From positions 1 through 64,000 of the forward strand of contig JAPDFW010000094.1 in NCBI GenBank assembly GCA_028826165.1: a DNA stretch of 64,000 nt, given 5' to 3'. Shown here in pieces: positions 33,131-55,817 of this stretch. Made by a program: the position numbers and the translations under genes. Within the stretch, counting starts at the first letter, position 1; each line of letters begins with the position of its first letter. Under the pieces are notes generated by a model that was not told the DNA's origin, made no database searches, and saw only the letters and a list, made by a program, of their open reading frames with translations. The DNA comes from Anaeramoeba ignava BMAN (taxonomy: Eukaryota; Protista; Anaeramoebae).

Positions 33131-36100
33131 CTAGACTATTCCAACTTCTTTGATTGTATCAAGAAATAAAGTAACATTTTGAGAAAAAATGTTCCTATTT
33201 TCAGGTTCTAAATTTTTTTCAACGCCTCTCATTAAAATTTGAAATATTTCAACACCTTTTGGTTGAGATTCTTGGTCAAGTTCAGAGATGAAACGGTTTT
33301 TCATTTCTTCGAAAAATGTTTCATCAATAACAATAAGATCCAAAAGAGCTCGAGAAAGAGACCAATGAGAATAATAGAGTTCGTAAATCAATTTATCCAT
33401 TAGAACCTTCATTGATTCTCTCAGAATATCAGGATTATTTGCGAAATGAGAGTTGAGAAGATTTGCGATATTGATTTTTTCGATATTTCTTTGCAAAGGA
33501 TTGTTGTAAATATTGGAGTAGAATGAGAAAATATGGTCCAAAGTGAAACAGCAACGGGAAACGATGATTTTGTTATTAATTTTCAATCCAATATGGATTT
33601 TTTTAATCAAATTGGAGAATTCTTCTGAAGTCAATTCTGCGATATGTTCCAGATGAATATCAGTTACAATCTCAAGAAAATGATAGAATCTCTTTGTAAA
33701 TTCAGGAAAAGCTGGGATTGCCTCGTTCGGGATTGCTTTCATAAGAAGAATACCTGAAACAACCATATTTTTCACAAGGGAATCATTGTAATATTTGAAG
33801 TATCCAAATGTGATTAATTCGGATGATAAACAAAACGACAAAATTCGGTGGCAATTAGCGATTGATTTGAATTTCCATCGCATTTCCTCCATATTTGACA
33901 AGCGAGTTTCAATGGAGTTTATTGACTCAACAAGCGAGAGCATATCACCAAACTCGCCTGTTGTTTCCATGCCTGATTGAAGAGACTCTTCCTTTTCGAA
34001 AATAAACTGGCAGTAATTCAGAACAATTTCGCCGACTTGTCTAAACACTTTGAAGCTGATTGAGGAATTTCCTGATGAGTTTATTCTGTTGTATCTGTTG
34101 TGTGAAAACTCGATCCAAAATTTCAGGAATGAGTCGAGAAGTTCTGGATTTTCGAAGGAGTTTTTTGTTAATTGCTTGAAAAATTCTGAGTATTTTGGGG
34201 AAAACCACTCAAAAAATCTTGTGAATTGTTTTTGAGTAATAATTGAGCTCAAAAACCCTCGGAAATCATCGGAAATCACAGCCAACATAAACTGCAGTTT
34301 GTCGGTTGTTATTTCGTTGTTGCTGTTATTGATGATGTTGTTGTTGTTGTTTTCTTCTCCTTCTCTTTTGGAAGTGATTAATTTATCAAATTGATTCAAA
34401 CGAAACTCAAAATTGGAAACTAAATTTCTTAAGGGTTGGTTCACATCACTTGTTTCTGAAGAAATAAACAGGCCTCTTGAGACAATCTCCATGAATTTCC
34501 TTCTGAAAGTGCGATTTCTTGATGAGCTCAAAAGGAAGAAGTTTTCTCTGATAAATTCAGAGACAATCAGATCAAGCAGCTGAGGAGTTGTTGAGAGGCT
34601 TTTGAATGTTCTTGAAAGAATTATTGAGGAAAATAAGGTGATTGATTCTGAGATGATTTGCTCAGAATCGGACCAGAAGATGAAATTTTTGATGGTTCTT
34701 TGGAGAATTATCGTGTATTTTTTACTTTCTTCATTATCCATCAATTGCTCTGACAAATTGAGCAAATCAACTTGTGTATTTTGCAAGAAATGCAAAAAAC
34801 TAAGCTCAACAAAACCGAGAAAAGACGGTAATGAATGATTTTCCAAATCGACGAATTGATTTGGACTCAAATTGAGATTCAAACTTGTGCTCATATTTTT
34901 GCTTTCATTATCATTATCATTATCGTTATTATTAATATCCTCTTCATTTGAATAAAAAAACTCATTTATATGGAAATAAAAATCGTAAACCAAAGAAGAG
35001 AGTTTTGAAACGAATTCCATTCTAGCCTCGAGTGGAGTGATTCCCACTGAGTTCTTGATTGAGGATGTGATGAATAAATTGAGCACAGAAATTTGCATGC
35101 TTGGAATAACGAGAGAAGAAAGATCTTCTCCGTAAAATTTGGGCAATTTACTATTTGCATTTTGATTATTTGCTGTATTATCCCGGAAATCTTGCGATGA
35201 TCTATTGACATTCAATTGGGAAAGATTAATAAGCAGATTTGTGGAGAAATTGCGGAAGGATTCGAGATTTGGACGGTAAAGTTGCTCGTAAAAATTGATT
35301 GTTGAAGAGACGTTTACTTTCCCTAATTCTGCACCAATTTGAATTTTTTCCAAAAGCATTGAATCCAAAATCCATGATTGATCTTCAAACAGATTTCCTG
35401 ATTCGAATTGGTGTTTCACGACGTTGATGATGAGCTGAACATATGATTCGAATATGATTTGGATGTAATTTGCAAACTCGCTTCTGTTTATTCCCAAGTT
35501 CGAGTTGATTATATTCGCAGAAATACTTGGATCGATTGAAGTTGATGAAAAATACAAGTGCTTGTAAAGTTGGATCCAAAAACGGATCAAATAATCGATT
35601 CCGTTTTGGAAGTAATTGAAGTAACTCTCGAGATTTCCTGAGCAATTTTGGAGTATGTCGAGAGTAAGAAAGGCAGTCAATTCGAGAAGATGTGGAGCCG
35701 ATTTGAGATTGGAAAACTCCAAAATGCTTAATGAAGTGACAATTTTAAACAGCAAACGCGAGAGACTGTGGAAATTCTCGATTGTATCAATTCCACGTTT
35801 TGACTGGATTATTGTTGATATTCCAGAAATAACATCCTCAAAAAATTCATCGCGTTTGGATTCCTTGGAAAAAATAGAGGCTCGTGTGCTTGAAATAAGA
35901 AACAAAACCTCCAGGATCTTGGACCCAAGATTTGAGGGATGGAGATTGTAATAATCAAACAATAATTTGATCGTTGTTTGCGATTCAAAAAGATATCGCC
36001 ATGAATTTGGGAATTGGATTGTTATAAAATCGGAAGATGAAGCCTTTTCCGATGAGCGAGTTGCATGAAAATTATAAGAAAAGCAAGTAAAAACAACATC

Positions 36101-36901
36101 AATACAAATGTTGATGATATTGATACTTTCATTCGAATGTTGGTTTGACATCCGATTTTTTCTTATTGAGTATTGTTGATTTTGCTCGTTTATTAAAGAA
36201 TTAAATTTTTTCTCCTCGAAGTCATTAAATTCATCATAAAAAACAGAATTTTCAAAAGGCGAATAGTCTGCGTTTGAATTGTGGAATGCTAAATAAGTCA
36301 AAGCCTTTTGCAAAATGAAAATTAATTGGTGATCCCGAAAAGAAGCTGATTTTCTTTTATGAAGAATTAATGTTTCCTTTTGCTGGATAATGTTTGAAAA
36401 TTGGTAGATCATTTCCATATAAACTTTAAAACCCAAAACTGAATTATCTCCCAAAAAATTTGGGTCGTTAAAAAAATCGCGTGAAGAAAACAATCTCTTT
36501 TGAATTTGATTAACAAATTGCGAATTATGATTTAAAATATCCCAATCAAGTTTAATTATTCTTCCAATTGTTTTTATAAGAGATTTTTCTGCATTTGGAT
36601 CTAATGATTTCTGAGTAAATATATTCATAATCGTGTTGAAAATGGCTTCAATTTGCTCGTGTTGAATTGAATGCCAATGTTTTGTTAAAAGATTAAATAA
36701 TTCATTCGAAATAAATATTTGAGTGTATTTGCAATTTGTTTGTTGAAGAAAAAATGGTCCTTCATCAATAAATATGATTGAATTTGTTAATGAACGCAGT
36801 TTCACTTCTGCATTTTGTCTTTTTGTTGGATCTTGTGATGTTAAACATTGAGTTGCTAATTCGTTAATTTCTTCAATTTCTTTTTTTCTTAAATTTGTCA
36901 T
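33131..36901 (-). CDS. XPO7: Exportin-7 / RanBP16-17 family importin-beta-like protein (intronless)
   Basis: Importin-beta N-terminus, HKRKSASFRDHQL, QFPNSWR, ENFHSLSRLL, LKFWIEFSHNRYNRI, FGYFKYYND, WSLSRALLDLI, ENRNIFSQN. Confidence 0.85.
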   Translation of the reverse strand: MTNLRKKEIEEINELATQCLTSQDPTKRQNAEVKLRSLTNSIIFIDEGPFFLQQTNCKYTQIFISNELFNLLTKHWHSIQHEQIEAIFNTIMNIFTQKSLDPNAEKSLIKTIGRIIKLDWDILNHNSQFVNQIQKRLFSSRDFFNDPNFLGDNSVLGFKVYMEMIYQFSNIIQQKETLILHKRKSASFRDHQLIFILQKALTYLAFHNSNADYSPFENSVFYDEFNDFEEKKFNSLINEQNQQYSIRKNRMSNQHSNESINIINICIDVVFTCFSYNFHATRSSEKASSSDFITIQFPNSWRYLFESQTTIKLLFDYYNLHPSNLGSKILEVLFLISSTRASIFSKESKRDEFFEDVISGISTIIQSKRGIDTIENFHSLSRLLFKIVTSLSILEFSNLKSAPHLLELTAFLTLDILQNCSGNLESYFNYFQNGIDYLIRFWIQLYKHLYFSSTSIDPSISANIINSNLGINRSEFANYIQIIFESYVQLIINVVKHQFESGNLFEDQSWILDSMLLEKIQIGAELGKVNVSSTINFYEQLYRPNLESFRNFSTNLLINLSQLNVNRSSQDFRDNTANNQNANSKLPKFYGEDLSSLVIPSMQISVLNLFITSSIKNSVGITPLEARMEFVSKLSSLVYDFYFHINEFFYSNEEDINNNDNDNDNESKNMSTSLNLNLSPNQFVDLENHSLPSFLGFVELSFLHFLQNTQVDLLNLSEQLMDNEESKKYTIILQRTIKNFIFWSDSEQIISESITLFSSIILSRTFKSLSTTPQLLDLIVSEFIRENFFLLSSSRNRTFRRKFMEIVSRGLFISSETSDVNQPLRNLVSNFEFRLNQFDKLITSKREGEENNNNNIINNSNNEITTDKLQFMLAVISDDFRGFLSSIITQKQFTRFFEWFSPKYSEFFKQLTKNSFENPELLDSFLKFWIEFSHNRYNRINSSGNSSISFKVFRQVGEIVLNYCQFIFEKEESLQSGMETTGEFGDMLSLVESINSIETRLSNMEEMRWKFKSIANCHRILSFCLSSELITFGYFKYYNDSLVKNMVVSGILLMKAIPNEAIPAFPEFTKRFYHFLEIVTDIHLEHIAELTSEEFSNLIKKIHIGLKINNKIIVSRCCFTLDHIFSFYSNIYNNPLQRNIEKINIANLLNSHFANNPDILRESMKVLMDKLIYELYYSHWSLSRALLDLIVIDETFFEEMKNRFISELDQESQPKGVEIFQILMRGVEKNLEPENRNIFSQNVTLFLDTIKEVGIV

Positions 36902-37047: not shown

Positions 37048-40000
37048 ATGAAACTTTTTATTTTCTTATTAATCTTTATTTTATTCTTATTTTCAAACAC
37101 ACAACTTTGCTATTTTGAATCCAATTCATTTTATAATTATTCTTCAATAATTGAATGTGCAAAATCAATTCCTTTTCAAGAAAATAATACAGTTATTGAA
37201 ACAGTAAATCAAATGATTGAAGAATATGTTTTTAAAGATATTGTTCAAAATATTTCAACTGAATTTCATCATTTCCAAATCAATTTAACAGAAGAATTTA
37301 ATCAAATTAATCAACAAATGTTTTCAAATGATTTTGATTTTCAACAATCAATATCTGATGTTTTTGATTCACTTTATGATGCTCATACTATTTATATTAA
37401 ACCTCAATGTTATGTTTCTCTTTATCTCGTTTTTCCATTACAATTGTCTTTGAAAGAAAATCAATATTCAAATCCAGAAGTTTATGTTTCAGGTATTCTT
37501 GCAAATTCAGATAATATTGCTAATATTTATGAATCTATAACAGGAATTGATCCAAGAGATTATATTGGAGAAACTATTATTACAATTGATAATCAAGTAA
37601 TTTTTTAAAATATTCAAAATATTTAAAATATTCAAAATATTCAAAATATTCAATATATTCAATATATTCAATATATCCAATATATTCAATATATTCAAAA
37701 TATTCAAAATATTCAAAATATTCAAATATTCAATATATTCAATTTATTCAAAATATTCAAAATATTCAAAATATTCAATATATTCAATATATTCAATTTA
37801 TTCAATATATTCAATATATTCAATATATTCAATTTATTCAATATATTCAATATATTCAATTTATTCAATATATTCAAAATATTCAAAATATTCAATATAT
37901 TCAATATATTCAATATATTCAATATATTCAAAATATTCAATTTATTCAATTTATTCAATTTATTCAATATATTTCAAAATATTTAAAAATATTCAATATA
38001 TTCAATATATATTCAATTTATTCAATTTATTCAATATATTCAATACATTCAATTTATTCAATATATTCAATACATTCAATTTATTCAATATATTCAAAAT
38101 ATTCAAAATATTTAATATATTCAATATATTCAAAATATTCAATACATTCAATTTATTCAATATATTCAATTTATTCAATTTATCCAATTTATCCAATTTA
38201 TCCAATTTATCCAATTTATTCAATTTATTCAATATATTCAATATATTCAATATATTCAATTTATTCAATATATTCAATATATTCAATATATCCAATTTAT
38301 TCAATTTATTCAAAATATTCAATTTATTCAATATATCCAATTTATTCAATTTATTCAAAATATTCAATTTATTCAAAATATTCAAAATATTCAAAATATT
38401 CAATATATTCAATTTATTTAATATATTTAATATATTCAAAATATTCAAAATATACAATATATTCAAAATATAAATAGGATGCTTGGTATTATCTTTTAGT
38501 TGAATCTTCAAAACTTTCAATTTCAAAAGATCCTTCTTCTTGTTTAAATGAATATCTTCAAAATGATTTTATGGCATTAAATCTTGGATATTCTCCAATA
38601 CCTGAAAAAGAAAACAGAACTATTCAATTTAATTCAGGTTTTGTTGATTTTCCTTTTATTGGAATGTGTACAAGTAATTTTAGTTCACAATCAGATTTTC
38701 AAACACAATGTCTTTGTAAGTATTATTAGTTATTTTTATTTATTTTTATCATTTTTAATTATTTTAATTATTTTTATTATTAATTATTTAGCTGGATTAA
38801 GTGCAAAAATTTAGAAAAATCCAAATCAAAAAATTTTAAAGAGAAAGAAAGAAAAGAAGTTTTATCTCCTGTTTTAGAAAAAAGAAAAAGAATAAAGCAA
38901 ATGATTCGTGAATATTTTACTTCAAAAGATAATGAAAATAAAAATGAAAACCAAAAAGAAGAACAAGAAAATGTTATTGATGGAAGTGTTATTATTTTTA
39001 ATACATCTGATTCTGTTAATTTTGAAGTTTTTACAGGTGATTCAGGAATTCAATATGGAATATTACAAGTTATTTCATTTATGCCAGATGATCTAAATGA
39101 ATTTGGAGAAATTATAGATTATGGAATGGAATATATTCAATCAAACAATATTGATTATTTAGTTATTGATCTTAAACAAAATGGAGGAGGTTATATTGAT
39201 TTAAGTTATCAATTATTCCATTATTTTTTCAATTTAACAAACGAACCAATTTTTGGAAATTATGATTTCAGACATTCAAATCTTAATGATCAATTATTTA
39301 TTAAATGTGCTGAAAATGAAAATTGTAAAGGAGATTCTGAAAGTTTATATTCACCATTACTTTGGTATAATCAAACAGAACAACAGTTCAACAATTCAGA
39401 TTACTATACACCAGGAATTAGTTATTTAAGAGGAGAAGAAGTTTCACAATATTCAATACCAATTCATGAAGTTTCAAATATTTCTTACAAAAGTCCAATT
39501 CAATTTGATAAAAATCATTTTATATTATTATCAGATGGAATTTGTGGAAGTTCATGTGCAGTTTTTTCATCTAAAATTATTCAAAACAATTTATCAACAA
39601 CATTTACTATTGGAGGAATTCCAAATTCAGAAATGGGATTTAATAGTTTTCCAGGAGGACAAGTATATAATTCAGAAAGTTTACTTTATGATCTTTTAAT
39701 TCAATTCCCTTATATTTATGGAATTACAATTGATAATCCACCAACACCATTTGAATCAGATAATGAAGTTAGTTTTACTTATCGAGAGATTTATCCATTT
39801 GATACAAATGAAATTAACAATTCAACAATTCCACTTGAATTTATGTTTTTACCAACAGAAAATAAATTGAATATTTGGGATTTTTCAAATGAATCATTAA
39901 TTTATCAAGGAATTGATAGTTATTTAAATCCAATTCCATCTCCAACTCCAACTCCAGCACCTGTAAATGGAAATTCTAAGTCAAGTAAAACTGGATTAAT

Positions 40001-40127
40001 TGTTGGAGTTATTATTGTTATTATTGTTATTATTGGTTTATTGATTGGTTTTGCTACTTATCGACTCAAAAAGAAAAAGAATTTAGAAACTCAAATGTAT
40101 TCACAATTAATTGATGATCAATTATAA
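37048..40127 (+). CDS. Secreted S41-family peptidase-like protein, copy 1 (type I TM, YSQL tail); introns 37597-38477, 38716-38791
   Basis: Signal peptide, [47 protein letters not shown] followed by a basic stop-transfer segment. One 1-nt frameshift near 38805. Confidence 0.8.
37605..38470 (+). repeat. 9-bp tandem repeat (AATATATTC/AAAATATTC/AATTTATTC) in copy 1 intron 1
   Basis: Visible array. Confidence 0.95.
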
Positions 40128-40512
40128 ATCAATAAGAAAATAAAAAAGAAAAAAAGGAAATTCTAAAAAGAAAAATAACCCCTTTTTTATTAATTTTCAA
40201 TTTAATTTTTAATTTAATTTTCAATTTAATTTTTAATTTAATTTTTATTTAAAGAGATCAAATTAATTTTTAATTTAATTTTCAATTTAATTTTTAATTA
40301 AAGAGATCAAATTCCAAAAAAAAAATAAAAGAAAAAGAAAAAGAAAAATTCAAGTAAACAATTAAAAAGAAAAAACCAAATAAAAAAAATTTTTTTTCTC
40401 ATTTTCATTTTTCACACCCTCAAAAAAAAATAACTAATAATAACACCCAAATTCAATTAAACAAAAACATTGATTAAATTTTCCTTTTTTTTATCTAAAT
40501 TTAAAATCCAAA

Positions 40513-42696
40513 ATGAAAGTTTTTATTTTCTTATTAATTTTCCTTTTATTTTCATTTTCAAATACACAACTTTGTAATTTTCAAGCTAATTATGTTCAAT
40601 ATTATTCTTCAATAGTTGAATGTGCAAAATCGGTCCCTTTTCAAGAAAATAATACAGTTATTGAAACAGTAAATCAAATTATTGAAGAATATGTTTTTAA
40701 AGATATTGTTCAAAATATTTCAACTGAATTTCATCATTTCCAAATTAATTTAACAGAAGAACTTAATCAAATTAATCAAGAAACATTTTCAAATGATTTT
40801 GATTTTCAACAATCAATATCTGATATTTTTGATTCACTTTATGATGCTCATACTATTTATATTAAACCTCAATGTTATGTTTCTCTTTTCTTCTTTTTCC
40901 ATTACAATTAGCTTTGAAAGAAAATGGATCTTCAAATCCAGAAGTTTATGTTTCAGGTATTTATGCAGATTCAGATAATTTTGCTAATATTTATCTATAT
41001 ATAACAGGAATTGATCCAAGAGATTATATTGGAGAAACTATTATTACAATTGATAATCAAGTAATTTTTTAATTTATTCAAAATATTTAATATATTCAAA
41101 ATATTAAAAATATTTAAAATATTCAATATATAAATAGGATGCTTGGCATTATCTTTTAGTTGAATCTTCAAAACTTTCAATTTCAAAAGATCCTTCTTCT
41201 TGTTTAAATGAATATCTTCAATGGGATTTTCTACAAATAAGTCTTGGATATTCTCCAATACCTGAAAAAGAAAGTAGAACTATTCAATTTAATTCAGGTT
41301 CTGTTGATTTTCCTTTTATTGGAATGAGTACAAGTAATTTCAATTCACAATCAGATTTTGAAACACAATGTCTTTGTAAGTTTTATTATTATCATTTTTA
41401 ATTATAATTTGATTTTAATTCTAATTCTCATTTTGATAATTATTTAGCTGGATTAAATGAAACAAATTTAGAAAAATTCAAATCAAATAATTTTAAAGAG
41501 AAAGAAAGAAAAGAAGTTTTATCTCCTGTTTTAGAAAAGAAAAGAATAAAGCAAATGATTTATGAATATTTTACTTCACAAGATAATGAAAACCAAAATG
41601 AAAAAAAAGATGTTATTGATGAAAGTGTTATTATTTTTAATACATCTGATTCTGTTAATTTTGGAAGTTTTTACAGGTGATTCAGGAATTCAATATGGAA
41701 TATTACAAGTTACTTCATTTTCACCAAATAATCTAACTGAATTTGAAGAAATTATAGATTATGGAATGGAATATATTCAATCAAACAATATTGATTATTT
41801 AGTTATTGATCTTAGTCAAAATGGAGGAGGTTATATTGATTTAAGTTATCAATTATTCTATTATTTTTTCGATTTAACAAACTGAACCAATTTTTGGAAA
41901 TTATGATTTCAGACATTCAAAATTTAGTGATCAATTTTTTATTAAATGTGCTCAAAATGAAAATTGTACAAATGATATGTATCTTTTGTATTCACCATTA
42001 CTTTGGTATAATCAAACAGAACAACAATGCACTAATGAAGATTGGTATACACCAGGAATTAGTTATTTAAGAGGAGGAGAATTTGTACAATATTCAATAC
42101 CAATTCATATGAATCATGATATTTCTTGGAAAAGTCCAATTCAATTTGATAAAAATCATTTTATATTATTATCAGATGGAATTTGTGGAAGTTCATGTGC
42201 AGTTTTTTCATCTAAAATTATTCAAAACAATTTAGCAACAACATTTACTATTGGAGGAATTCCAAATTCCGAAATGGGATTTAATAGTTTTCCAGGAGGA
42301 CAAGTATATAATTCAGACTATTTAGTTTATGATATAAGTGATTTAGAATATTATTATGGAATTACAATTGATGGCCTACCTCCACCATTTGAATCAGATA
42401 ATGAAGTCAGTTTTACTTATCGAGAAATTTATCCATTTGATACAAATGAATTTAACAATTTAACAATTCCACTTGAATTTATGTTTATACCAACAGAAAA
42501 TAGATTGAATATTTGGGATTTTTCAAATGAATCATTAATTTATCAAGGAATTGATAGTTATTTAAATCCAATTCCATCACCAACTCCAAGTTATTCACCA
42601 ACACCAACACCAACACCAAGTGAAGCTTCAAATTTTTCAATTTCTTTCTTAATCAAATTGATTTTTGGTTTATTTTTGATTGATTTTTTCTTTTAA
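40513..42696 (+). CDS. S41-like peptidase copy 2 (GPI-type C-terminus); introns 41061-41137, 41376-41447
   Basis: Paralogous exons with DAHT, DLSQNGGG and CGSSC intact. It ends PTPSEASNFSISFLIKLIFGLFLIDFFF*. Frameshifts near 40895, 41660 and 41883. Confidence 0.75.
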
Positions 42697-43262
42697 AATC
42701 CTTTTTTTTTTCATCTTCAAATTCTTTTTCTTTTTAATTTTCTTTTAAAATCCAATTTCTTTTTTTTTTCTAAATTCCTTTTTCTAAACTCCAAACAAAC
42801 AATCAATAAAACCAAATTCAAAAACAAATTTTTTTTTTAATTTTTTTTTTTAATTTTTTTTTTAATTAATTTTAAATCTAAAAGAAAAAAAGTAGGAAAA
42901 ATTTAAATGAAAAAAAAATTTTTTATTTATTTTAAATTATTTAATAAAAGGGATCATATTATAAATCAAAAAGAAAAGAAGAAAGTAAATAGTAAAAAAA
43001 AAAAGAATAATAACAATTTTTTATTTTTATTTTCAATTTAATTTTTAAATAAAAGGATCAAATTTCAAACAAAAAAATATTGAATCCAACTCATCATAAA
43101 CAAAAATAAAAAAATAAAAAAAATTTTTTTCTTTCATTTCTCTGTTTTCCAAAAAAAAAATAGTCATAACAAAAACAACAAAAATAATAACACAAACAAA
43201 ACTCAATTAAACAAAAACATTGATTAAATTTTCCTTTTTTTTAACTAAATTTAAAATCCAAA

Positions 43263-45981
43263 ATGAAAGTTTTTATTTTCTTACTAATTTTCCTTTTATT
43301 CTCATTTTCAAACACACAACTTTGTAATTTTCAAGCTTATTATGTTCGCTATTATTCTTCAATAGTTGAATGTGCAAAGATCAGTTCCTTTTCAAGAAAA
43401 TAATACAGTTATTGAAACAGTAAATCAAATGATTGAAGGATATGTTTTTAAAGATATTGTTCAAAATATTTCAACTCAATTTCATCATTTCCAAATCAAT
43501 TTAACAGAAGAATTTAATCAAATTAATCAAGAAACATTTTCAAATGATTTTGATTTTCAACAATCAATATCTGATGTTTTTGATTCGCTTTATGATTACT
43601 TTACTTTTTACAATAAACCAGAATGTTATGTTTCTCTTTATCTTCTTTTTCCATTACAATTAGCTTTGAAAGAAAATGAATATTCAAATCTAGAAGTTTA
43701 TGTTTCAGGTATTTATGCAAATTCAGATACTTTTGCTGATATTTATGTATATATGACAGGAATTGATCCAAGAGATTATATTGGAGAAACTATTATTACA
43801 ATTGATAATCAAGTAATTTTTCAAAAATATTCAATATATTCAAAATATTCAAAATATTCAATATATTCAAAATATTCAAAATATCCAAAATATATTCAAA
43901 ATATTCAAAATATTCAATATATTCAAAATATTCAAAATATTCAATATATTCAATTTATTCAATATATTCAATATATTCAAAATATTCAATATATTCAAAA
44001 TATTCAATATATTCAATATATTCAATATATTCAAAATATTCAAAATATTCAAAATATTCAATATATTCAATATATTCAATATATTCAATATATTCAATAT
44101 ATTCAATTTATTCAATATATTCAATATATTCAATATATTCAATTTATTCAAAATATTCAAAATATTCAAAATATTCAAAATATTCAATATATTCAATTTA
44201 TTCAAAATATTCAAAATATTCAAAATATTCAAAATATTCAAAATATTCAATATATTCAATATATTCAATATATTCAATTTATTCAATTTATTCAAAATAT
44301 TCAATATATTCAAAATATTCAAAATATTCAATTTATTCAATTTATTCAATATATTTAAAATATTCAAAATATTCAAAATATTCAAAATATTCAATATATA
44401 AATAGGATGCTTGGCATTATCTTTTAGTTGAATCTTCAAAACTTCCTATTTCAAAAGATCCTTCTGCTTGTTTAAATGAATATCTTCAATATCATTTTAT
44501 GGAAATATGTCTTGGATATTATCCAATACCTGAAAAAGAAAGTAGAACTATTCAATTTAATTCAGGTTCTGTTGATTTTCCTTTTCTTGGAATGAGTACA
44601 AGTAATTTCAATTCACAATCAGATTTTGAAACACAATGTCTTTGTAAGTTTTATTATTATTATTATTTTTAATCATTTTTAATTATAATTTGATTTTAAT
44701 TCTAATTCTCATTTTGATAATTATTTAGCTGGATTAAATGCAACAAATTTAGAAAAATCCAAATTAAAAAGTTTTAAAGAGAAAGAAAGAAAAGAAGTTT
44801 TATCTCCTGTTTTAGAAAGAAAAAGAATAAAGAAAATGATTTATGAATATTTTACTTCAAAAGATAATGAAAACCAAAAAGAAAAACAACAAGAAGATGC
44901 TGTTGATGGAAGTGCTATTATTTTTAATACATCTAATGCTGTTAATTTTGGAGTTTTTACAGGTGATTCAGGAATTCAATATGGAATATTACAAGTTACT
45001 ACATTTTCACCAAATAATAAAACTGAATTTAAAGAAATTATAGATTATGGAATGGAATATATTCAATCAAACAATATTGATTATTTAGTTATTGATCTTA
45101 GTCAAAATGGAAGAGGATATGTTGATTTAAGTTATCAATTATTCCATTATTTTTTCAATTTAACAAATGAACCAATTTATGGAAATTATGATTTCAGACA
45201 TTCAAGTTCTAGTGATCAATTCTTTATTAAATGTGCTCAAAATGAAAATTGTACAAATGATATGTATCTTTTGTATTCACCTTTATATTGGTATAATCAA
45301 ACAGAACAACAATGCACTAATGAAGATTGGTATACACCAGGAATTAGTTATTTAAGAGGAGGAGAATTTGCTCAATTCTCAACTTTGGTTCATGAAGCTC
45401 CAGATATTTCTTGGAAAAGTCCAATTCAATTTGATAAAAATCATTTTATATTATTATCAGATGGAATTTGTGGAAATATGTGTGGTACGTTTTCATCAAA
45501 AATTATTCAAAACAATTTAGCAACAACATTTACTACTGGAGGAATTCCAAATTCTGAAATGTCATTTATAAGTTTTCCAGGAGGAGGAACATATGATTCA
45601 AACCATATATTTTATGATATAAATGTTTTACAATATTATTATGGAATTACAATTGATAATCCACCAACACCATTTGAATCAGATAATAAAATTGGTTTTA
45701 CTTGTCAAGAAGTTTATCCATTTGATACAAATGAAATTAACAATTTAACAATTCCACTTGAATTTATGTTTATACCAACAGAACATAGATTGAATATTTG
45801 GGATTTTTTAAATCAACCATTAATTTATCAAGGAATTGATAGTTATTTAAATCCAATTCCATCACCAACTCCAAGTTATTCACCAACACCAACACCAACA
45901 CCAAGTGAAGCTTCAAATTTTTCAATTTCTTTCTTAATCAAATTGATTTTTGGTTTATTTTTGATTGATTTTTTCTTTTAA
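43263..45981 (+). CDS. S41-like peptidase copy 3 (GPI-type C-terminus; predicted catalytic motifs substituted); introns 43813-44405, 44644-44728
   Basis: DYFT replaces DAHT, NGRG replaces NGGG, and CGNMC replaces CGSSC. One homopolymer frameshift near 43376. Confidence 0.75.
43820..44400 (+). repeat. 9-bp tandem repeat in copy 3 intron 1
   Basis: Same unit as 37605-38470. Confidence 0.95.
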
Positions 45982-46175
45982 AATCCTTTTTTTTTTCATC
46001 TTCAAATTCTTTTTCTTTTTAATTTTCTTTTAAAATCCAATTTCTTTTTTTTTTCTAAATTCCTTTTTCTAAACTCCAAACAAACAAACAATCAATAAAA
46101 CCAAATTCAAAAACAAATTTTTTTTTTAATTTTTTTTTTCATTTTTTTTTTCATTTTTTTTAATTTAAAACCCAA

Positions 46176-48456
46176 ATGAAACTTATTTTCCTATTAATTT
46201 TCCTTTTATTTTCATTTTCAAACACACAACTTTGTAATTTTCAAGCTAATTATGCTGAATATTATTCTTCAATAGTTGAATGTGCAAGATCAGTTCCTTT
46301 TCAAGAAAATAATACAGTTATTGAAACAGTAAATCAAATTATTGAAGAATATGTTTTTAAAGATATTGTTCAAAATATTTCAACTGAATTTCATCATTTC
46401 CAAATCAATTTAACAGAAGAACTTAATCAAATTAATCAACAAACATTTTCAAATGATTTTGATTTTCAACAATCAATATCTGATGTTTTAGATTCACTTT
46501 ATGATGCTCATACTAGTTACGTTAAACCTCTTTGTTATGTTTCTCTTTATCTTATTTTTCCATTACAATTAGCTTTGAAAGAAAATGGATCTTCAAATCC
46601 AGAAGTTTATGTTTCAGGTATTTATGCAAATTCAGATAATATTGCTAATATTTATCAATCTATGACAGGAATTGATCCAAGAGATTATATTGGAGAAACT
46701 ATTATTACAATTGATAATCAAGTAATTTTTTAATTTATTCAAAATATTCAAAATATTCAATATATTCAATATATTCAATATATTCAATATATTCAATTTA
46801 TTCAATTTATTCAATATATTCAATATATTCAAAATATAAATAGGATGCTTTGGATTATCTTTTAAATGAATCTTCAAAACTTTCAATTTCAAAAGATCCT
46901 TCTTCTTGTTTAAATCAATATCTTCAAAATGATTTTATGGTTATAAGTCTTGGATATTCTCCAATACCTGAAAAAGAAAACAGAACTATTCAATTTAATT
47001 CAGGTTCTCTTGGATTTCCTTTTATTGGAATTAGTATAAGTACTTTCAATTCACAATCAGATTTTCAAACACAATGTCTTTGTAAGTTTTATTTTAATTA
47101 TAATTTGATTTTAATTCTAATTTTTATTTTGATAATTATTTAGCTGGATTAAATGCAACAAATTTAGAAAAATTCAAATCAAAAAGTTTTAAAGAGAAAG
47201 AAAGAAAAGAAGTTTTATCTCCTGTTTTAGAAAAAAAAAGAATAAAACAAATGATTTATGAATATTTTACTTCAAAAGATAATGAAAATCAAAAAAAAGA
47301 AAAAGAAGAAAAAGAAAATGTTATTGATGGAAGTGTTATTATTTTTAATACATCTAATGCTGTTAATTTTGGAGTTTTTACAGGTGATTCAGAAATTCAA
47401 TATGGAATATTACAAGTTACTTCATTTGTTCCAAATAATCAAAATGAATTTGAAGAAATTGTAGATTATGGAATGGAATATATTCAATCAAACAATATTG
47501 ATTATTTAATTCTTGATCTTAAACAAAATGGAGGAGGTTATATTGATTTAAGTTATCAATTATTCCATTATTTTTTCAATTTAACAACTGAGCCAATTTA
47601 TGGAAATTATGATTTCAGACATTCAAATCTTAATGATCAATTCTTTATTAAATGTGCTCAAAATGAAAATTGTACAAATGATATAGCGTTTTTGTATTCA
47701 CCATTACTTTGGTATAATAAAACAGAACAACAATGTACTAATGAAGATTACTATACACCAGGAATTAGTTATTTAAGAGGAGAAGGTGTTTCACAATATT
47801 CAACACCAATTCATGAAGTTTCAGACATTTCTTGGAAAAGTCCAATTCAATTTGATAAAAATCATTTTATATTATTATCAGATGGAATTTGTGGAAGTTC
47901 ATGTGCAGTTTTTTCATCTAAAATTATTCAAAACAATTTATCAACAACATTTACTATTGGAGGAATTCCAAATTCTGAAATGGGATTTAATAGTTTTCCA
48001 GGAGGACAAGTATATAATTCAGAATATATATTTTATGATATAAGTGATTTAGAATATTATTATGGAATTGTAGTCGATAATCCACCAACACCATTTGAAT
48101 CAGATAATGAAGTTAGTTTTACTTATCGAGAAATTTATCCATTTGATACAAATGAAATTAACAATTCAACAATTCCACTTGAATTTATGTTTTTACCAAC
48201 AGAAAATAAATTGAATATTTGGGATTTTTCAAATGAATCATTAATTTATCAAGGAATTGATAGTTATTTAAATCCAATTCCATCACCAACTCCAAATCCT
48301 AATTACACAAAATCAGAATCTTCTGAAGCTGGTTTAGTTGCTGGTCTTATTATTTCAACTATTGCTATTCTCGCAATTATTTTGGTTTTTGGTTTCTATT
48401 CTGCAAAAAAGAAAAAAGATTCTCAAAAAATTTATGAAACAGTCGATGATAATTAA
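46176..48456 (+). CDS. S41-like peptidase copy 4 (type I TM, YETV tail); introns 46722-46843, 47082-47143
   Basis: All motifs intact. TM AGLVAGLIISTIAILAIILVFGFY, tail KKKKDSQKIYETVDDN*. Confidence 0.82.
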
Positions 48457-48654
48457 CTTTCTTTTCTTTCATTTTTTTTTCCTCTTTTTTTTTCCACTTT
48501 TTAAATTTCATCAATTTTACCATTTTTTTTTTCTAAATTCCTTTTTCTAAACTCCAAACAAACAAAAATCAATAAAAACCAAATTCAAAAACAAATTTTT
48601 TTTTTAATTTTTTTTTTCATTTTTTTTTTTCATTTTTTTTAATTTAAAACCCAA

Positions 48655-51359
48655 ATGAAACTTATTTTCCTATTAATTTTCCTTTTATTTTCATTTTCAA
48701 ACACACAACTTTGTAATTTTCAAGCTAATTATGCTCAATATTATTCTTCAATAATTGAATGTGCAAAATCAATTCCTTTTCAAGAAAATAATACAGTTAT
48801 TGAAACAGTAAATCAAATTATTGAAGAATATGTTTTTAAAGATATTGTTCAAAATATTTCAACTGAATTCCATCATTTCCAAATCAATTTAACAGAAGAA
48901 CTTAATCAAATTAATCAACAAACATTTTCAAATGATTTTGATTTTCAACAATCAATATCTGATGTTTTAGATTCACTTTATGATGCTCATACTATTTATA
49001 TTAAACCTCTTTGTTATGTTTCTCTTCATCTTATTTTTCCATTACAATTAGCTTTGAAAGAAAATGGATCTTCAAATCCAGAAGTTTATGTTTCAGGTAT
49101 TTATGCAAATTCAGATAATATTGCTAATGTTTATCTATATATAACAGGAATTGATCCAAGAGATTATATTGGAGAAACTATTATTACAATTGATAATCAA
49201 GTAATTTTTTAATTTATTCAAAATATTCAAAATATTCAATTTATTTAAAATATTCAATATATTCAATTTATTCAATATATTCAATATATTCAATTTATTC
49301 AATTTATTCAATATATTCAATTTATTCAATATATTCAATTTATTCAAAATATTTAAAATATAAATAGGATGCTTTTGATTATCTTATAAATGAATCTTCA
49401 AAACTTTCAATTTCAAAAGATCCTTCTTCTTGTTTAAATCAATATCTTCAAAATGATTTTATGGTTATAAGTCTTGGATATTCTCCAATACCTGAAAAAG
49501 AAAACAGAACTATTCAATTTAATTCAGGTTCTCTTGGATTTCCTTTTATTGGAATTAGTATAAGTACTTTCAATTCACAATCAGATTTTCAAAACACAAT
49601 GTCTTTGTAAGTTTTATTTTTATTTTTAATTCTGATTTTAATCAATTTAATTTTAATTCTAATTTTTATTTTGATAATTATTTAGCTGGATTAAATGCAA
49701 CAAATTTAGAAAAATTCAAATCAAAAAGTTTTGAAGAGAAAGAAAGAAAAGAAGTTTTATCTCCTGTTTTAGAAAAGAAAAGAATAAAACAAATGATTTA
49801 TGAATATTTTACTTCAAAAGATAATGAAAATCAAAAAAAAGAAGAAAAAGAAGAAAAAGAAAATGTTATTGATGGAAGTGTTATTATTTTTAATACATCT
49901 GATTCTGTTAATTTTGGAGTTTTTACAGGTGATTCAGGAATTCAATATGGAATATTACAAGTTACTTCATTTTCACCAAGTAATCTAACTGAATTTAAAG
50001 AAATTGTAGATTATGGAATGGAATATATTCAATCAAACAATATTGATTATTTAATTCTTGATCTTAAACAAAATGGAGGAGGTTATATTTCTTTAAGTTA
50101 TCAATTATTCCATTATTTTTTCAATTTAACAAACGAACCAATTTATGGAAATTATGATTTCAGACATTCAAATCTTAATGATCAATTCTTTATTAAATGT
50201 GCTCAAAATGAAAATTGTACAAATGATATAGCGTTTTTGTATTCACCATTACTTTGGTATAATAAAACAGAACAAGAATGTACTAATGAAGATTACTATA
50301 CACCAGGAATTAGTTATTTAAGAGGAGAAGGTGTTTCACAATATTCAATACCAATTCATGAAGTTTCAGATATTTCTTGGAAAAGTCCAATTCAATTTGA
50401 TAAAAATCATTTTATATTATTATCAGATGGAATTTGTGGAAGTTCATGTGCAGTTTTTTCATCAAAAATTATTCAAAACAATTTATCAACAACATTTACT
50501 ATTGGAGGAATTCCAAATTCCGAAATGGGATTTAATAGTTTTCCAGGAGGACAAGTATATAATTCAGAATATATATTTTATGATATAAGTGATTTAGAAT
50601 ATTATTATGGAATTGTAGTCGATAATCCACCAACACCATTTGAATCAGATAATGAAGTTAGTTTTACTTATCGAGAAATTTATCCATTTAATACAAATGA
50701 AATTACCAATTCAACGATTCCACTTGAATTTATGTTTATACCAACAGAAAATAAATTGAATATTTGGGATTTTTCAAATGAATCATTAATTTATCAAGGA
50801 ATTGATAGTTATTTAAAACCAACTCCAACACCAACACCAACACCAACACCAACACCAACACCAACACCAACACCAACTCCAACACCAACACCAACACCAA
50901 CACCAACTCCAACACCAACACCAACTCCAACACCAACTCCAACACCAACTCCAACACCAACTCCAACACCAACTCCAACTCCAACACCAACACCAACTCC
51001 CAACACCAACACCAACTCCAACACCAACTCCAACTCCAACACCAACACCAACTCCAACACCAACACCAACTCCAACACCAACTCCAACTCCAACACCAAC
51101 TCCAACACCAACACCAACTCCAACTCCAACACCAACACCAACACCAACTCCAACTCCAACTCCAACACCAACACCAACACCAACACCAACTCCAACACCA
51201 AATTACACAAAATCAGAATCTTCTAAAGCTGGTTTGATTGCTGGTGTTGTTATTTCAGTTATTGTGGTTGTTGCTGTTGCTTTGGTTTTTGTTTTCTATC
51301 GTTATAAAAAGAAACAGAATACTGAGATCAATTATCATTTAATGGAGGATAATGTTTAA
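48655..51359 (+). CDS. S41-like peptidase copy 5 (long Pro-Thr stalk, type I TM, YHLM tail); introns 49201-49367, 49607-49685
   Basis: Motifs intact. There is a frameshift at ~49591 and an extra C at ~51001 in the PT repeat. After correction it ends [43 protein letters not shown]. Confidence 0.8.
50818..51200 (+). repeat. (CCAACA/CCAACT)n coding repeat, ~60+ Pro-Thr dipeptides
   Basis: Visible hexamer array within the copy 5 CDS. Confidence 0.95.
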
Positions 51360-51645
51360 AAGTCTTTTTTTCATCTTCAAATTCTTTTTTTCAAATTCAA
51401 ATTCTTTTTTTTCAAATTCGAATTCTTTTTTTTTCAAATTCGAATTCTTTTTTTTCAAATTCGAATTCTTTTTTTTTCATCTTCGAATTCTAATTTTTCA
51501 TCTTTTTTTCAAATTCGAATTCTTTTTTTTCAAATTCGAATTCTTTTTTCATCTTCAAATTCTTTTTTTCATCTTCAAATTCTTTTTTTTTCAAATTCAA
51601 ATTCTTTTTTTTTCATCTTCAAAATCTTTTTTTTCAAATTCAAAA
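51360..51645 (+). repeat. (TTCAAATTC[GAATTC]TTTTT)n degenerate repeat in the copy 5-6 spacer
   Basis: Amplified version of TCATCTTCAAATTCTTTTT, which occurs once after copies 2 and 3. Confidence 0.8.
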
Positions 51646-51702
51646 AAAGCAAAAAAAATTTTTCATTTTTCATTTTTCATTTTTTTTAATTTTAAATCCA
51701 AA

Positions 51703-53952
51703 ATGAAAGTTTTTATTTTCTTATTAATTTTTCCTTTTATTTTCATTTTCAAACACACAACTTTGTAATTTTCAATCCAATTTATTTTATAATTATTCTT
51801 CAATAGTTGAATGTGTAAAATCAGTTCCTTTTCAAGAAAATAATACAGTTATTGAAACAGTAAATCAAATTTTTGAAGAATATGTTTTTAAAGATATTGT
51901 TCAAGATATTTCAACTGAATTTCATCATTTCCAAATTAATTTAACAGAAGAACTTAATCAAATTAATCAAAAAACATTTTCAAATGATTTTGATTTTCAA
52001 CAATCAATATCTGATATTGTTGACTCACTTTATGATGCTCATACCAGCTATCAAAAACCACTCTGTTATAATTCTTTCACATTTTATTTTCCATTACAAT
52101 TATCAATTAAAGAAAATCAATATTCAAATCCAGAAGTTTATGTTTCAGGTATTTATGATAAAATTGAAGGTTTTGCTAATATTTATGAATCTATAACAGG
52201 AATTAATCCAAGAAATTATATTGGAGAAACTATTATTACAATTGATAATCAAGTAATTTTTTAATTTATTCAAAATATTCAAAATATTCAAAATATTTAA
52301 TATATTCAAAATATATAAATAGGATGCTTGGGATTTTCTATTGATTGAATCTTCAAAACTTTCAATTTCAAAAGATCCTTCTTGTTGTTTAAATCAATAT
52401 CTTCAAAATGATTTTATGGAAATAAGTCTTGGATATTCTCCAATACCTGAAAAAGAAAACAGAACTATTCAATTTAATTCAGGTTCTGTTGATTTTCCTT
52501 TTATTGGAATGTGTACAAGTAATTTTAGTTCACAATCAGATTTTCAAACACAATGTCTTTGTAAGTTTTATTTTTATTTTTAATTCTGATTTTAATCAAT
52601 TTAATTTTAATTTTAATTTTTATTTAGCTGGATTAAATGAGACAAATTTAGAAAAATCCAAATTAAAAAGTTTTGAAGAGAAAGAAAGAAAAGAATTTTT
52701 ATCTCCTGTTTTAGAAAAGAAAAGAAGAAAACAAATGATTTATGAATATTTTACTTCACAAGATAATGAAAAAGAAAATGTTATTGATGGAAGTGTTGTT
52801 ATTTTTAATACATCTAATTCTGTTAATTTTGAAGTTTTTACAGGTGATTCAGGAATTCAATATGGAATATTCCGAATAATAACATTTTCACCACCAAATC
52901 AAACTGAATTTGAAGAAATATTGAATTATGGAATGGAATATATTCAATCAAACAATATTGATTATTTAATTATTGATCTTAGACAAAATGAAGGAGGTAT
53001 TATTGCTTTAAGTTATCAATTATTCTATTTCTTTTTCAATTTAACAAATTCACCAATTTATGGAAATTATGATTTCAGACATTCAAGTATAAATACTCAA
53101 ATGTTTACTAAATGTGCTGAAAATGAAAATTGTACAGAAAAGCAAATGTTTTTTACACCTTTATATTGGTATAATCAATCTGAACAACAATGGACTAATG
53201 GAAATTGGTTTGATCCTGTTACTTATTTAAGAGGAGGAGAATTTGCTCAATTCTCAACTTTGGTTCATGAAGCTCCAAATATTTCTTGGAAAAGTCCAAT
53301 TCAATTTGATAAAAATCATACTATATTATTATCAGATGGAATTTGTGGAAGTTCATGTGCAGTTTTTTCATCTAAAATTATTCAAAACAATTTAGCAACA
53401 ACATTTACTATTGGAGGAATTCCAAATTCAGAAATGTCATTTATAAGTTTTCCAGGAGGACAATCTTTTTATTCAGGAGGTTTAATTGAATATATCAATA
53501 TACTTGAAGAAACTTATGGAATTGTAATTGATAATCCACCAACACCATTTGAATCAGATAATGAACTCATGTTTACTTATCGAGAAATTTATCCATTTAA
53601 TACAAATGAAATTACCAATTCAACGATTCCACTTGAATTTATGTTTTTACCAACAGAAAATAAATTGAATATTTGGGATTTTTCAAATGAATCATTAATT
53701 TATCAAGGAATTGATAGTTATTTAAATCCAACTCCATCTCCAACTCCAAATCCTAATCAAAATTCAAGTTCTTCAGGAAATAAAAAAGTTACAATAGCTC
53801 TTGGTGTTGTTATTCCTATTGTTTTTATTTCCGTAATTATTATAGTAATAATTATTTATCGAAAAAAAAACAAAAAAACTTCATATATAGATTTAAGTTC
53901 TGAAGAGATTAAAAATGAAAACAAATTTTTGGTTGATTTGGGTTTAATTTAA
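51703..53952 (+). CDS. S41-like peptidase copy 6 (type I TM, YIDL tail); introns 52253-52322, 52561-52627
   Basis: DAHT, DLRQNEGG, CGSSC. TM IALGVVIPIVFISVIIIVIII, tail RKKNKKTSYIDL...FLVDLGLI*. Poly-T frameshift in the signal peptide. Confidence 0.8.
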
Positions 53953-54001: not shown

Positions 54002-55817
54002 TTAATTTTGATTTTGATTTTGATTATTAAATTTTTTAATTAATAAATTAAATAAATTTGGATATGTTTGATTTAATTGAAAATAATCAATTCCAATTTG
54101 AATTTCTTCAATTATTTCTTGTGTAATTTGAATTTCATCTTTAATTTGATTTGAATAAATCCAATATTCAAATATTTGAAATGATTTATTACTTAATTCA
54201 CTATAATCTGTAACTTTATTAGATTTATCTTCTAGTAACAGATAAAAACATTCCTCGATATAATTCACTTCTCATTATTAATATTAATTTTGGAAATTTA
54301 TATTGTTTTTCTTTTCTTTCAATTATAAAATCTTTTTCATTTTCATTTTCATTTTCATTTAAATAAATTCTTTTCATTGTTTCTTCAATTTTTTCATTTA
54401 AATTTAAAATTTCTTTAATTTCAGAATATAATTTTGGATTTATTTTGGAATTATTTGAATAAATCATTTCAAATATTTGATTTGATTCTTTAATTGATTT
54501 TTTGAAATAATTTCTTTAAGTTTTTCATTTTCATTTTGATTTTGATTTAATCTATATTTCAATATTAATTTATGAGCTTCAATTATTTCTCCATTTTCTG
54601 TTTTAAATGAAATATCACAAAATTCTTTTCTTTGGAATAATTTTATCAAATCTTCTTCAAGATTGGAAAAAGAAGGAGGAGAATAATAAAAAAATGAATT
54701 GTTATATCCACAAGAAATACGATAATTATAAATATTTTCATTAAATCTTAATTTAGGAAGTTCAATTTGAATTGGAAGTAATTGATTATTTGTATTTCCA
54801 TTTCCTAATTGACCATAACCATTATTTCCAAATACTATTAATTTTGATTTAGATGCTAAAATCAAAGTATGAGCATTTCCAACAGAAAAATCAAGAATAT
54901 TATCATCATTTTCAAATAAAGATGATTTGATTTCAGTAAATTTAGTTATTCTGTCTCCCATCTTATTTAATCCTGATAAATTTATTTCTCCACATGAATA
55001 AAGTTTTCTTTTTGGATTTTCATTTTCATCTTCATTTTCAACCAGCATTATTGAATGCCAAAATCCACATTGAATATCAATTATTTTGCCTTTTGGAATA
55101 TTTTGGATTTTGGTTAATTTTTGGATAAAATACAAATCATTTCCAATTCCCATTGAACTATTGAAATTATTACCGCATCCAAATAATTCTTGATTTGAAT
55201 TTAAAAGAAAAACCAGATTAGAAGTATTTCCTGAAAATATTTTAGAAACATTTTTCATTATTAAAATAGGTTTTTCTGTTTTTGTAAGTGTTTCATAATC
55301 AAAACCAAGTTGACAAAATTTATTTGAACCAATTCCATAAACATTTTGATTTGAAGTTAATAAGTAAATTGAATGAGATCCAGAAACAATATCTTGAATT
55401 ATTCTATCGTTTGTATCTTCAATTAATGATGAAATATTGATAAATTCTTTGGATTTTTGGATTGATATCAATTCCTTTGGCAAATACATTTCCTTCTATT
55501 GTTAAAATAGCTTCATTATCATAACCAATAGATACTTTTTGGATATTTTCTTCAATTTGGATTTTTTTAGGTTTTTGATTTGAATCTTTTTCATTTAAAT
55601 ATTCTATTGCTTTTCCATTTTTAAAAAGGAAAATTGTTGAAAATTTTGATGATGAAATTTGTTTAATTTGTTTTTCATTTTCATTTTCATTTTCATTTTC
55701 TTTTTCATTTTCATTTTCATTTTCAAATTTAAATTGAATTGGTTTTATTATTTTATTTGGTTTATTTTTGATAAGTTTTGGATATTCATTTAAACCAAAA
55801 AATAAAATTTCATTCAT
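54002..55817 (-). CDS. RCC1-BTB protein, copy E (three 1-nt frameshifts)
   Basis: ORFs 55419-55817, 54464-55489, 54225-54467 and 54002-54268 are collinear with copies A-D. Confidence 0.82.

Follow-up and report, generated by a model that had tools for sequence, protein, structure and literature searches.

The 64,000-nucleotide (nt) stretch of DNA analysed here, referred to below as the window (positions 1 to 64,000 of contig JAPDFW010000094.1, assembly GCA_028826165.1), belongs to Anaeramoeba ignava BMAN, an anaerobic free-living metamonad amoeba, and harbours six tandem paralogous genes, all on the forward strand. In the account that we favour, and which we hold to be probable, if well short of certain, this array encodes type I membrane proteases of the CPAF-like branch of family S41 that carry LAMP-type cytosolic tails; anchor and tail form a cassette that has evolved apart from the ectodomain, and the frame breaks in several copies are mostly errors. 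The array genes have already been annotated automatically by NCBI as S41/tail-specific protease proteins, yet are uncharacterised. The genome paper and its supplements make no mention of the array family (PMC11550330), and a literature search for eukaryotic membrane-anchored S41 enzymes returned nothing.

A tblastn search with copy 4 found exactly six copies in the window, between positions 37048 and 53952 (Table 1). Copy 4 is the sole copy with an unbroken frame in the assembly and served as our reference; its hand-built gene model agrees with database protein P0001, and the product of its exon 3 is 100% identical to the A. ignava NCBI protein M0811_10781. Every copy consists of three exons, and both introns share position and phase across all six: intron 1 follows the ...IDNQ codons in phase 0 and intron 2, which spans 62-85 nt, follows ...QCL in phase 1, with the donors GTAATT and GTAAGT and TAG acceptors in all copies. 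For copy 3 both splice junctions are confirmed by the transcript-derived protein P0159. An earlier note on this DNA, made from the sequence alone, had described six tandem paralogues with two common intron positions that diverge abruptly past the YQGIDSYL block, and the search and the exon models agree with it on both points: DNA identity between the ectodomain exons of the copies is 86-98%, copy 6 being the most divergent, and the similarity collapses after YQGIDSYL. In the NCBI annotation copy 2 is reduced to a 377-amino acid (aa) fragment, and the N-termini of copies 3 and 6 are changed; copy 5 had no protein record in word-based searches, and a contig look-up had no contig encoding P0001 on record. 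Whole-protein searches used the database records P0001, P0002, P0004 and P0159, the remainder being searched exon by exon, and the codon columns of the three exons were pooled for statistics only. The length of intron 1 varies 12.6-fold (881, 77, 593, 122, 167 and 70 nt in copies 1 to 6) due to an AT-rich microsatellite with a unit of 8-9 nt, which includes positions 46753-46797 in copy 4 and reads as long NIL/NKL pseudo-open reading frames on the reverse strand.

The predicted fold, the domain order and a conserved His and Ser identify the ectodomain as a CPAF-like serine peptidase of family S41, for which proteolytic activity is predicted. The S41 assignment had been proposed in the earlier note, with HMMER and structure prediction as the means of checking it, and both approaches returned a match that narrows the assignment to the CPAF-like His/Ser type. 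The profile PF03572 scored 24.5-30.5 bits for copies 1, 4, 5 and 6 and for P0001 (five of the six tested; cut-off 24), and copy 3 lay slightly below the cut-off at 23.5. In a sequence-profile search of the PDB the top matches were tail-specific and C-terminal processing proteases (E 1.6e-8), and an exhaustive HMMER search collected 930 representative clusters at E <= 0.001. The CPAF-like PDZ model PF23658 (cut-off 27) scored 22 bits for P0001 and 28.4 bits for its relative P0020. An AlphaFold model (mean pLDDT 86.9, pTM 0.83) had CPAF as its best Foldseek matches, with E down to 1.5e-15, and all top hits were S41 proteins; VIA-align placed residues 40-642 of the model on residues 33-597 of CPAF (Z 18.8, root-mean-square deviation 4.4 Å, 450 residues), followed in the structure ranking by other S41 proteases and by IRBP modules (Z 12.4-13.5). 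Two points weigh against this identification: the PF03572 match spans only profile positions 2-60 of 165, that is the first third around the DLxQNGGG region, and the profile pieces containing His112 and Ser513 matched nothing in the PDB, so that their equivalence to the CPAF triad is assigned by position only.

An alignment of 40 relatives shows Asp110, His112, Asp386, Asn390, Gly392, Gly393, Gly509 and Ser513 to be invariant, and Cys511, Cys515, Gly534, Gly535, Gly548, Val551 and Tyr593 to be nearly so. In the AlphaFold model Ser513 forms the start of a helix (513-524) soon after a strand (503-507). The tail-specific proteases would call for a catalytic Lys approximately 25 residues past the Ser; alignment columns 528-599 contain no invariant Lys, the conserved positions there being Gly534, Gly535, Gly548, Val551, Glu591 and Tyr593. 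This places the family in a His/Ser (probably His/Ser/Glu) branch rather than with the Ser-Lys tail-specific type. Glu591, which lies in an REIY motif and is present in 32 of the 40 relatives, is the candidate third residue, and the alignment suggests that the triad is probably His112-Ser513-Glu591. Between the PDZ domain and the core lies a Lys/Glu-rich insert (residues 262-335) modelled with low confidence, and the ectodomain of copy 4 includes 15 N-x-S/T sequons and 10 Cys residues. The common ectodomain motifs that the earlier note ascribed to all six copies are intact in copies 1, 2, 4 and 5; copy 6 keeps the His and the Ser and has NEGG in place of NGGG, and copy 3 reads DYFT, NGRG and GNMC for the three catalytic motifs, both in the genome and in the transcript.

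Beyond YQGIDSYL the copies continue with a Pro/Thr/Ser linker, which is short in copies 1-4 and 6 and amounts to ~65 Pro-Thr units in copy 5. In copies 1, 4, 5 and 6 a transmembrane (TM) helix of 22-23 residues follows, then a Lys patch and a tyrosine motif of the form Tyr-x-x-hydrophobic (YxxPhi), reading YSQL, YETV, YHLM and YIDL, respectively, just as the earlier note had it. The tails around these motifs, which had been taken for largely dissimilar sequences, are instead diverged homologues that align in a membrane-proximal Tyr, the Lys patch, a YxxPhi motif 9-13 residues into the tail, and acidic residues; the motif is also present in the tail of a further paralogue, copy 8. We consider it likely that the tyrosine motif is functional, as a putative signal for adaptor protein (AP) complexes, since it persists in four diverged tails and shows ~2.6-fold enrichment among 48 distant relatives.

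The competing view is that these are plain surface ectoproteases, in which the TM segment does no more than hold the protease in the plasma membrane or the symbiosome membrane, evolution of the tail is unconstrained, and YxxPhi reflects inheritance combined with a proteome rich in Tyr and Ile/Leu. Several observations lend themselves to this view and tell against a sorting function: the motif would turn up in a random tail of equal length with a chance of 0.19-0.35; the product of these chances for four lineages, 0.003, is weakened because the four array tails share descent, their common motif being partly inheritance; and the paralogues 7 and 9 and the proteins of A. flamelloides have long acidic tails without any YxxPhi past the membrane-proximal Tyr. 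On the other hand, the Tyr and the hydrophobic residue have been kept in four lineages despite differences at the x positions and in the flanks. Among 48 non-Anaeramoeba relatives (representatives of 50%-identity clusters that have a TM helix followed by 8-60 tail residues) the motif occurs in 17, compared to 6.5 +/- 2.1 in shuffled tails, with none of 5000 shuffles reaching 17 and with only 7 of the 48 containing the reversed motif. In these relatives it is mostly separated from the membrane by 6-16 residues and lies close to the C-terminus, a LAMP-like placement. Bearers of the motif include proteins of Capsaspora, Andalucia, Blattamonas and Monocercomonoides, and the architecture as a whole is not special to the array but recurs in Capsaspora, Andalucia, Preaxostyla and Amoebozoa. 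Weighing both sides, we find it unlikely that the tails are mere anchors and retain a sorting role as the preferred reading.

The long tails of P0008, P0009 (A. flamelloides) and P0010 share an acidic block composed of an Asp/Glu run together with GFGF or EFEFE, which may constitute a sorting signal other than YxxPhi. At least six further A. ignava loci, the delta-COP-like locus on contig C86 not counted, encode an AP mu-type homology domain, and these genes contain introns. A single-exon match to the mu-homology domain (L003, G000:C86:180500-184000) was rejected as an AP mu subunit: with a longin-type N-terminus ahead of the mu-homology domain it is delta-COP-like, and its open reading frames (ORFs; 567-1034 and 1048-2262) are split by one short intron or a frame break.

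The relationship between ectodomain and tail becomes clearer from the paralogues elsewhere in the genome, of which there are three: copies 7 and 8 in tandem on contig C106 and copy 9 (P0006) on contig C81. Copy 7 is a seventh close copy, and copies 8 and 9 are divergent; in the ectodomain tree copy 8 is sister to a clade of copies 1 to 7 with 100% support, in which copy 7 is nested among the array copies. As judged by sequence comparison, the history of anchor and tail is separate from that of the ectodomain in three cases. Firstly, copies 2 and 3 are 83-97% identical up to a tract of complete identity that comprises the linker, the hydrophobic end, the stop codon and 3' flank, and which reads as a conversion or duplication tract starting at the border between ectodomain and linker. 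Secondly, copy 5 matches copy 4 at 98% DNA identity in the ectodomain and at 72% in TM segment and tail, and for copy 8 the order is inverted, with 57% in the ectodomain and 84% in TM segment and tail (70% at the protein level, E 7e-30); the third codon positions of copies 5 and 8 are 82% identical in the tails versus 59% in the ectodomains (Fisher p 0.01), a test that rests on 34 codons. Thirdly, the long acidic tail of copy 7 is not a Tyr tail but is homologous to that of copy 9 (34% over 100 residues, E 9e-9, z 6 versus shuffles).

The copies with a long Pro-Thr microsatellite, namely 5, 7 and 8 (~65-70 units in the latter two), are the ones involved in the cross-locus cases, which fits recombination within the repeat without proving it. 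Homogenisation of the ectodomains by conversion explains these comparisons as well as tail transfer does. The earlier idea of interchangeable anchors thus stands as an evolutionary pattern of separate histories in the three pairs; it does not stand as exon shuffling, because no intron separates ectodomain and tail, nor as a set of unrelated tails. The copy 7/copy 8 mini-array itself resembles a tail swap, in that copy 8 combines a divergent ectodomain (42% to the array) with an array-type Tyr tail, and copy 7, downstream of it, combines an array-type ectodomain with the long acidic tail of copy 9 type. In the 3' flank of copy 8 (reverse strand, ~225 nt past the stop codon, near position 4800 of locus L001) the last ~40 nt of the coding tail, the stop codon and a T run are repeated, as if the end of the tail had undergone a small tandem duplication. 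A match between the C-terminal ends of copies 3 and 7 was dismissed as low-complexity T-rich DNA.

Copies 2 and 3 end differently, in an identical hydrophobic stretch of 21 residues without a cytosolic tail, as had been noticed from the sequence, and such an end also occurs in six relatives. By inspection it has features of a glycosylphosphatidylinositol (GPI)-type signal, with Ser/Ala/Ser/Asn ahead of an 18-residue hydrophobic end, the stretch itself including one Lys and one Asp; these copies may possess a derived tail-less end and a putative GPI anchor. The genome encodes GAA1 (E 2.3e-63), PIG-T/Gpi16 (E 1.8e-66) and a C13 peptidase (E 2.4e-21), and because these are present alongside the mu-homology loci, both sorting routes are possible in this organism. 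Expression of the tail-less end is confirmed for copy 3 by P0159. As for the two genes that bear the GPI-type end, the protein of copy 3 is catalytically dead and the frame of copy 2 is broken in the assembly. Derivation of this end from a TM segment like that of copy 4 by deletion was considered and is only possible, its support being a ~20-nt match in T-rich sequence. The combination of altered motifs and transcript leads us to infer that copy 3 is an expressed, catalytically dead paralogue, or pseudo-protease, and no array copy other than this dead, tail-less one has a full-length ORF in the published transcriptome.

Relative to copy 4 the assembly contains nine single-base frame breaks, distributed over copies 1, 2, 3, 5 and 6. 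Copy 1 has a 1-nt deletion in an A run at ~38806, where the NCBI model keeps the frame via a donor 4 nt downstream; copy 2 has 1-nt indels at ~40888, ~41665 and ~41883; copy 3 has an additional A at ~43379; copy 5 has an additional A at ~49591 and an additional C at 50999-51001 inside the Pro-Thr repeat; and copy 6 has an additional T in a T run at ~51728, which takes both start codon and signal peptide out of the reading frame. The two additions in copy 5 shift the repeat into an Asn/Thr/Ser frame that meets a stop at 51226, and the Pro-Thr frame runs open through TM segment and tail. Two earlier claims hold in part as a result: a signal peptide common to all six copies is intact in the copy 3 transcript protein and requires a frame correction in copy 6, and the TM tail of copy 5 is obtained only after the frame has been corrected.

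We consider most or all of these breaks to be probably Nanopore assembly errors rather than signs of decay. The BMAN assembly was built from 2017-era Nanopore data and polished with Racon, Nanopolish and two rounds of Pilon (PMC11550330). Assembly errors are favoured because short-read polishing is weak in tandem paralogues, because the transcript protein lacks the additional A of copy 3, and because in-frame stops are wholly absent. P0159 (EukProt transcriptome, 681 aa, a complete ORF) equals copy 3 from residue 39 on, save one Pro-Thr unit, and passes the site of the additional A uninterrupted with its signal peptide intact. In the frame of copy 4 the seven close copies contain no in-frame stop versus ~48 expected if substitutions are placed at random, or 4-11 per copy (P(0) <= 0.01 for each copy). 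A maximum likelihood codon model with position-specific base frequencies yields an omega of 0.32, and for this reason we conclude that the array is under moderate purifying selection, not positive selection; the values of 0.7-1.2 that simple counting of dN/dS gives, suggestive of neutral or positive selection, are a composition artefact in the light of this model.

If the indels were real, the array would be decaying: only copy 4, and copy 1 by way of its shifted donor, would be full-length, the others would be young pseudogenes, and the variety of tails would be debris. Besides the nine breaks, the counting dN/dS values and the truncated or altered NCBI models of copies 2, 3 and 6, the 4-nt frame-shifting insertion in copy 7 speaks for decay. 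Two of the breaks, at 41665 and 40888, lie outside any run of at least three identical bases, and the transcript-derived proteins in the collection belong only to copy 3 and copy 9, with no transcript fragment of copies 1, 2, 4, 5 or 6 turning up in word-based protein searches; both facts weigh against our explanation by assembly error. Nonetheless, all nine breaks are single-base and seven of them lie within runs of at least three identical bases; the copy 3 break is missing from the ORF derived from mRNA; omega remains low once the AT bias is modelled; and the tail of copy 5 is still open and similar in protein sequence to that of copy 8. The absence of stops carries particular weight since pseudogenes in a 20%-GC gene would gain nonsense changes besides indels. 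Decay is accordingly a quite improbable explanation for the array, and frame breaks in this Nanopore-era assembly call for caution before they are read as pseudogenes.

A third possibility, that the S41 fold serves as a non-enzymatic ligand-binding or adhesion module like vertebrate IRBP and that the array diversifies recognition, can draw on the IRBP modules among the structural matches, on the expression with an open frame of copy 3 despite its lack of His, Gly loop and Ser, and on a fairly fast-evolving ectodomain, but appears very remote given that the His, the Ser and the NGGG loop are invariant in the 40 relatives and intact in copies 1, 2, 4 and 5 (NEGG in copy 6), and that CPAF, an active protease, is the best match across the whole ectodomain.

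Returning to membrane proteases with sorting tails as the favoured account, the array products would be type I membrane glycoproteins whose protease part faces the outside or a lumen. Their layout runs from a signal peptide through a helical N-domain with the His (DAHT), a PDZ-like domain, the disordered Lys/Glu-rich insert and the S41 core to a Pro/Thr stalk, a single TM helix and a cytosolic tail of 19-31 residues with Lys patch, YxxPhi and acidic residues. The tail motif would act as a tyrosine signal of the LAMP type that AP mu subunits recognise, and the enzymes would cycle from the surface to endosomes, lysosomes or phagosomes, where they would cleave lumenal proteins. Linker, TM helix and tail may move as one cassette by gene conversion or recombination that has its border at the linker; in copies 5, 7 and 8 this linker is a coding Pro-Thr microsatellite. 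Copies 2 and 3 would carry a derived tail-less end, possibly GPI-anchored, and copy 3 would be an expressed pseudo-protease.

Anaeramoeba keeps sulfate-reducing bacteria in a symbiosome that resembles an arrested phagosome (PMC11550330), and this resemblance makes it plausible that lumen-facing proteases with different address tails could help in telling food from partner. A bolder version, offered as speculation and in our view doubtful, is that an old pan-eukaryotic family of membrane-anchored CPAF-like serine proteases is addressed to lysosomes or phagosomes, and that Anaeramoeba shuffles cassettes at the Pro-Thr microsatellite to dispatch one scaffold to different membranes (surface, phagosome and symbiosome) via Tyr, acidic or GPI-type ends, with the dead copy as a decoy or binder.

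Table 1 Genes of the array, their features and two related copies; positions refer to the window unless a locus is named
Feature	Copy	Positions	Strand	Details
Gene	1	37048-40127	+	exons 37048-37596, 38478-38715, 38792-40127; M0811_10778, P0002; intron 1 881 nt
Gene	2	40513-42696	+	exons 40513-41060, 41138-41375, 41448-42696; M0811_10779, P0005 (annotated truncated)
Gene	3	43263-45981	+	exons 43263-43812, 44406-44643, 44729-45981; M0811_10780, P0003; transcript protein P0159
Gene	4	46176-48456	+	exons 46176-46721, 46844-47081, 47144-48456; M0811_10781, P0001, 698 aa
Gene	5	48655-51359	+	exons 48655-49200, 49368-49606, 49686-51359
Gene	6	51703-53952	+	exons 51703-52252, 52323-52560, 52628-53952; P0004 'peptidase s41 family protein'
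Intron 1	1, 2, 3, 4, 5, 6	37597-38477, 41061-41137, 43813-44405, 46722-46843, 49201-49367, 52253-52322	+	
Predicted catalytic His motif LYDAHT (His112)	4	46497-46514	+	
Equivalents of the His motif	1, 2, 3, 5, 6	37372-37389, 40837-40854, 43588-43605, 48976-48993, 52028-52045	+	DYFT in copy 3
DLxQNGGG loop	4	47515-47538	+	part matched by PF03572 and PDB S41 proteases
Equivalents of the DLxQNGGG loop	1, 2, 3, 5, 6	39168-39191, 41808-41831, 45094-45117, 50060-50083, 52975-52998	+	NGRG in copy 3, NEGG in copy 6
Predicted nucleophile motif SDGICGSSC (Ser513)	4	47878-47904	+	
Equivalents of the Ser motif	1, 2, 3, 5, 6	39531-39557, 42172-42198, 45457-45483, 50423-50449, 53332-53358	+	GNMC in copy 3
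Glu591 (REIY)	4	48127-48144	+	likely third triad residue
YQGIDSYL codons	4	48247-48270	+	last conserved ectodomain block, divergence point
Equivalents of YQGIDSYL	1, 2, 3, 5, 6	39903-39926, 42541-42564, 45826-45849, 50792-50815, 53701-53724	+	
Pro-Thr repeat linker	5	~50816-51200	+	
TM segment and tail	1	39993-40124	+	YSQL 40098-40109
TM segment and tail	4	48328-48453	+	YETV 48433-48444; AlphaFold helix 654-697
TM segment and tail	5	51228-51356	+	YHLM 51333-51344
TM segment and tail	6	53788-53949	+	YIDL 53884-53895
Tail-less hydrophobic C-terminus	2, 3	42631-42693, 45916-45978	+	GPI-type signal or bare membrane anchor
Tract 100% identical between copies 2 and 3	2	42540-42837	+	linker, hydrophobic end, stop, ~140 nt of 3' flank
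Gene	8	8027-5034 of L001 (G000:C106:66500-75500)	-	
Gene	7	4465-1056 of L001 (G000:C106:66500-75500)	-	

The array is flanked on one side by an RCC1-repeat/BTB gene (54464-55489, reverse strand) and on the other by a 1256-aa ORF without a Pfam match (33131-36901, reverse strand).

To our knowledge, S41 peptidases have been studied almost only in bacteria and organelles. Many free-living eukaryotes possess the CPAF-like branch described here in the form of type I membrane proteins whose tails are LAMP-like, all of its members being uncharacterised, and the array represents a clean natural example of an address cassette that evolves apart from the enzyme body. The closest known relative in structure, CPAF of Chlamydia (CT858, MEROPS S41), shares with the array proteins an N-domain with the His, a PDZ-like domain and an S41 core with the Ser, at a sequence identity of only 12-13%. 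CPAF is a secreted bacterial effector, whereas the array proteins are eukaryotic, encoded by genes with introns, predicted to be N-glycosylated, and equipped with a TM helix and a putative sorting tail. CPAF removes from itself an inhibitory segment between the PDZ domain and the core, and the Lys/Glu-rich insert at residues 262-335 is placed like this segment, a likeness that is an analogy only. Prc, CtpA, CtpB and D1 protease (S41A) have the DxxxNxGG loop and the S41 core in common with the array; these enzymes employ a Ser-Lys dyad, in contrast to the array family, in which the invariant His of the N-domain would take the role of the Lys. Because His replaces Lys, the UniProt label 'tail specific protease domain' describes the fold and not the mechanism.

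Parallels for the proposed sorting route come from unrelated proteins. Giardia ESCP is a type I membrane protease that reaches lysosome-like vacuoles via its YRPI motif and AP-1 (PMC6115752) and, like the array products, is a lumen-facing, TM-anchored metamonad protease with a short YxxPhi tail; unlike them it belongs to the papain-like class, and its sorting has been shown experimentally, where that of the array proteins is only inferred. LAMP and CD63 resemble the array proteins in their heavily glycosylated lumenal domain, single TM segment and short tail with YxxPhi near the C-terminus, and the tails of array relatives are LAMP-like in that they end in GYSPI or contain KYQTI; LAMP and CD63 are not enzymes, however, and share no homology with the array, so that the likeness is one of the sorting tail only.

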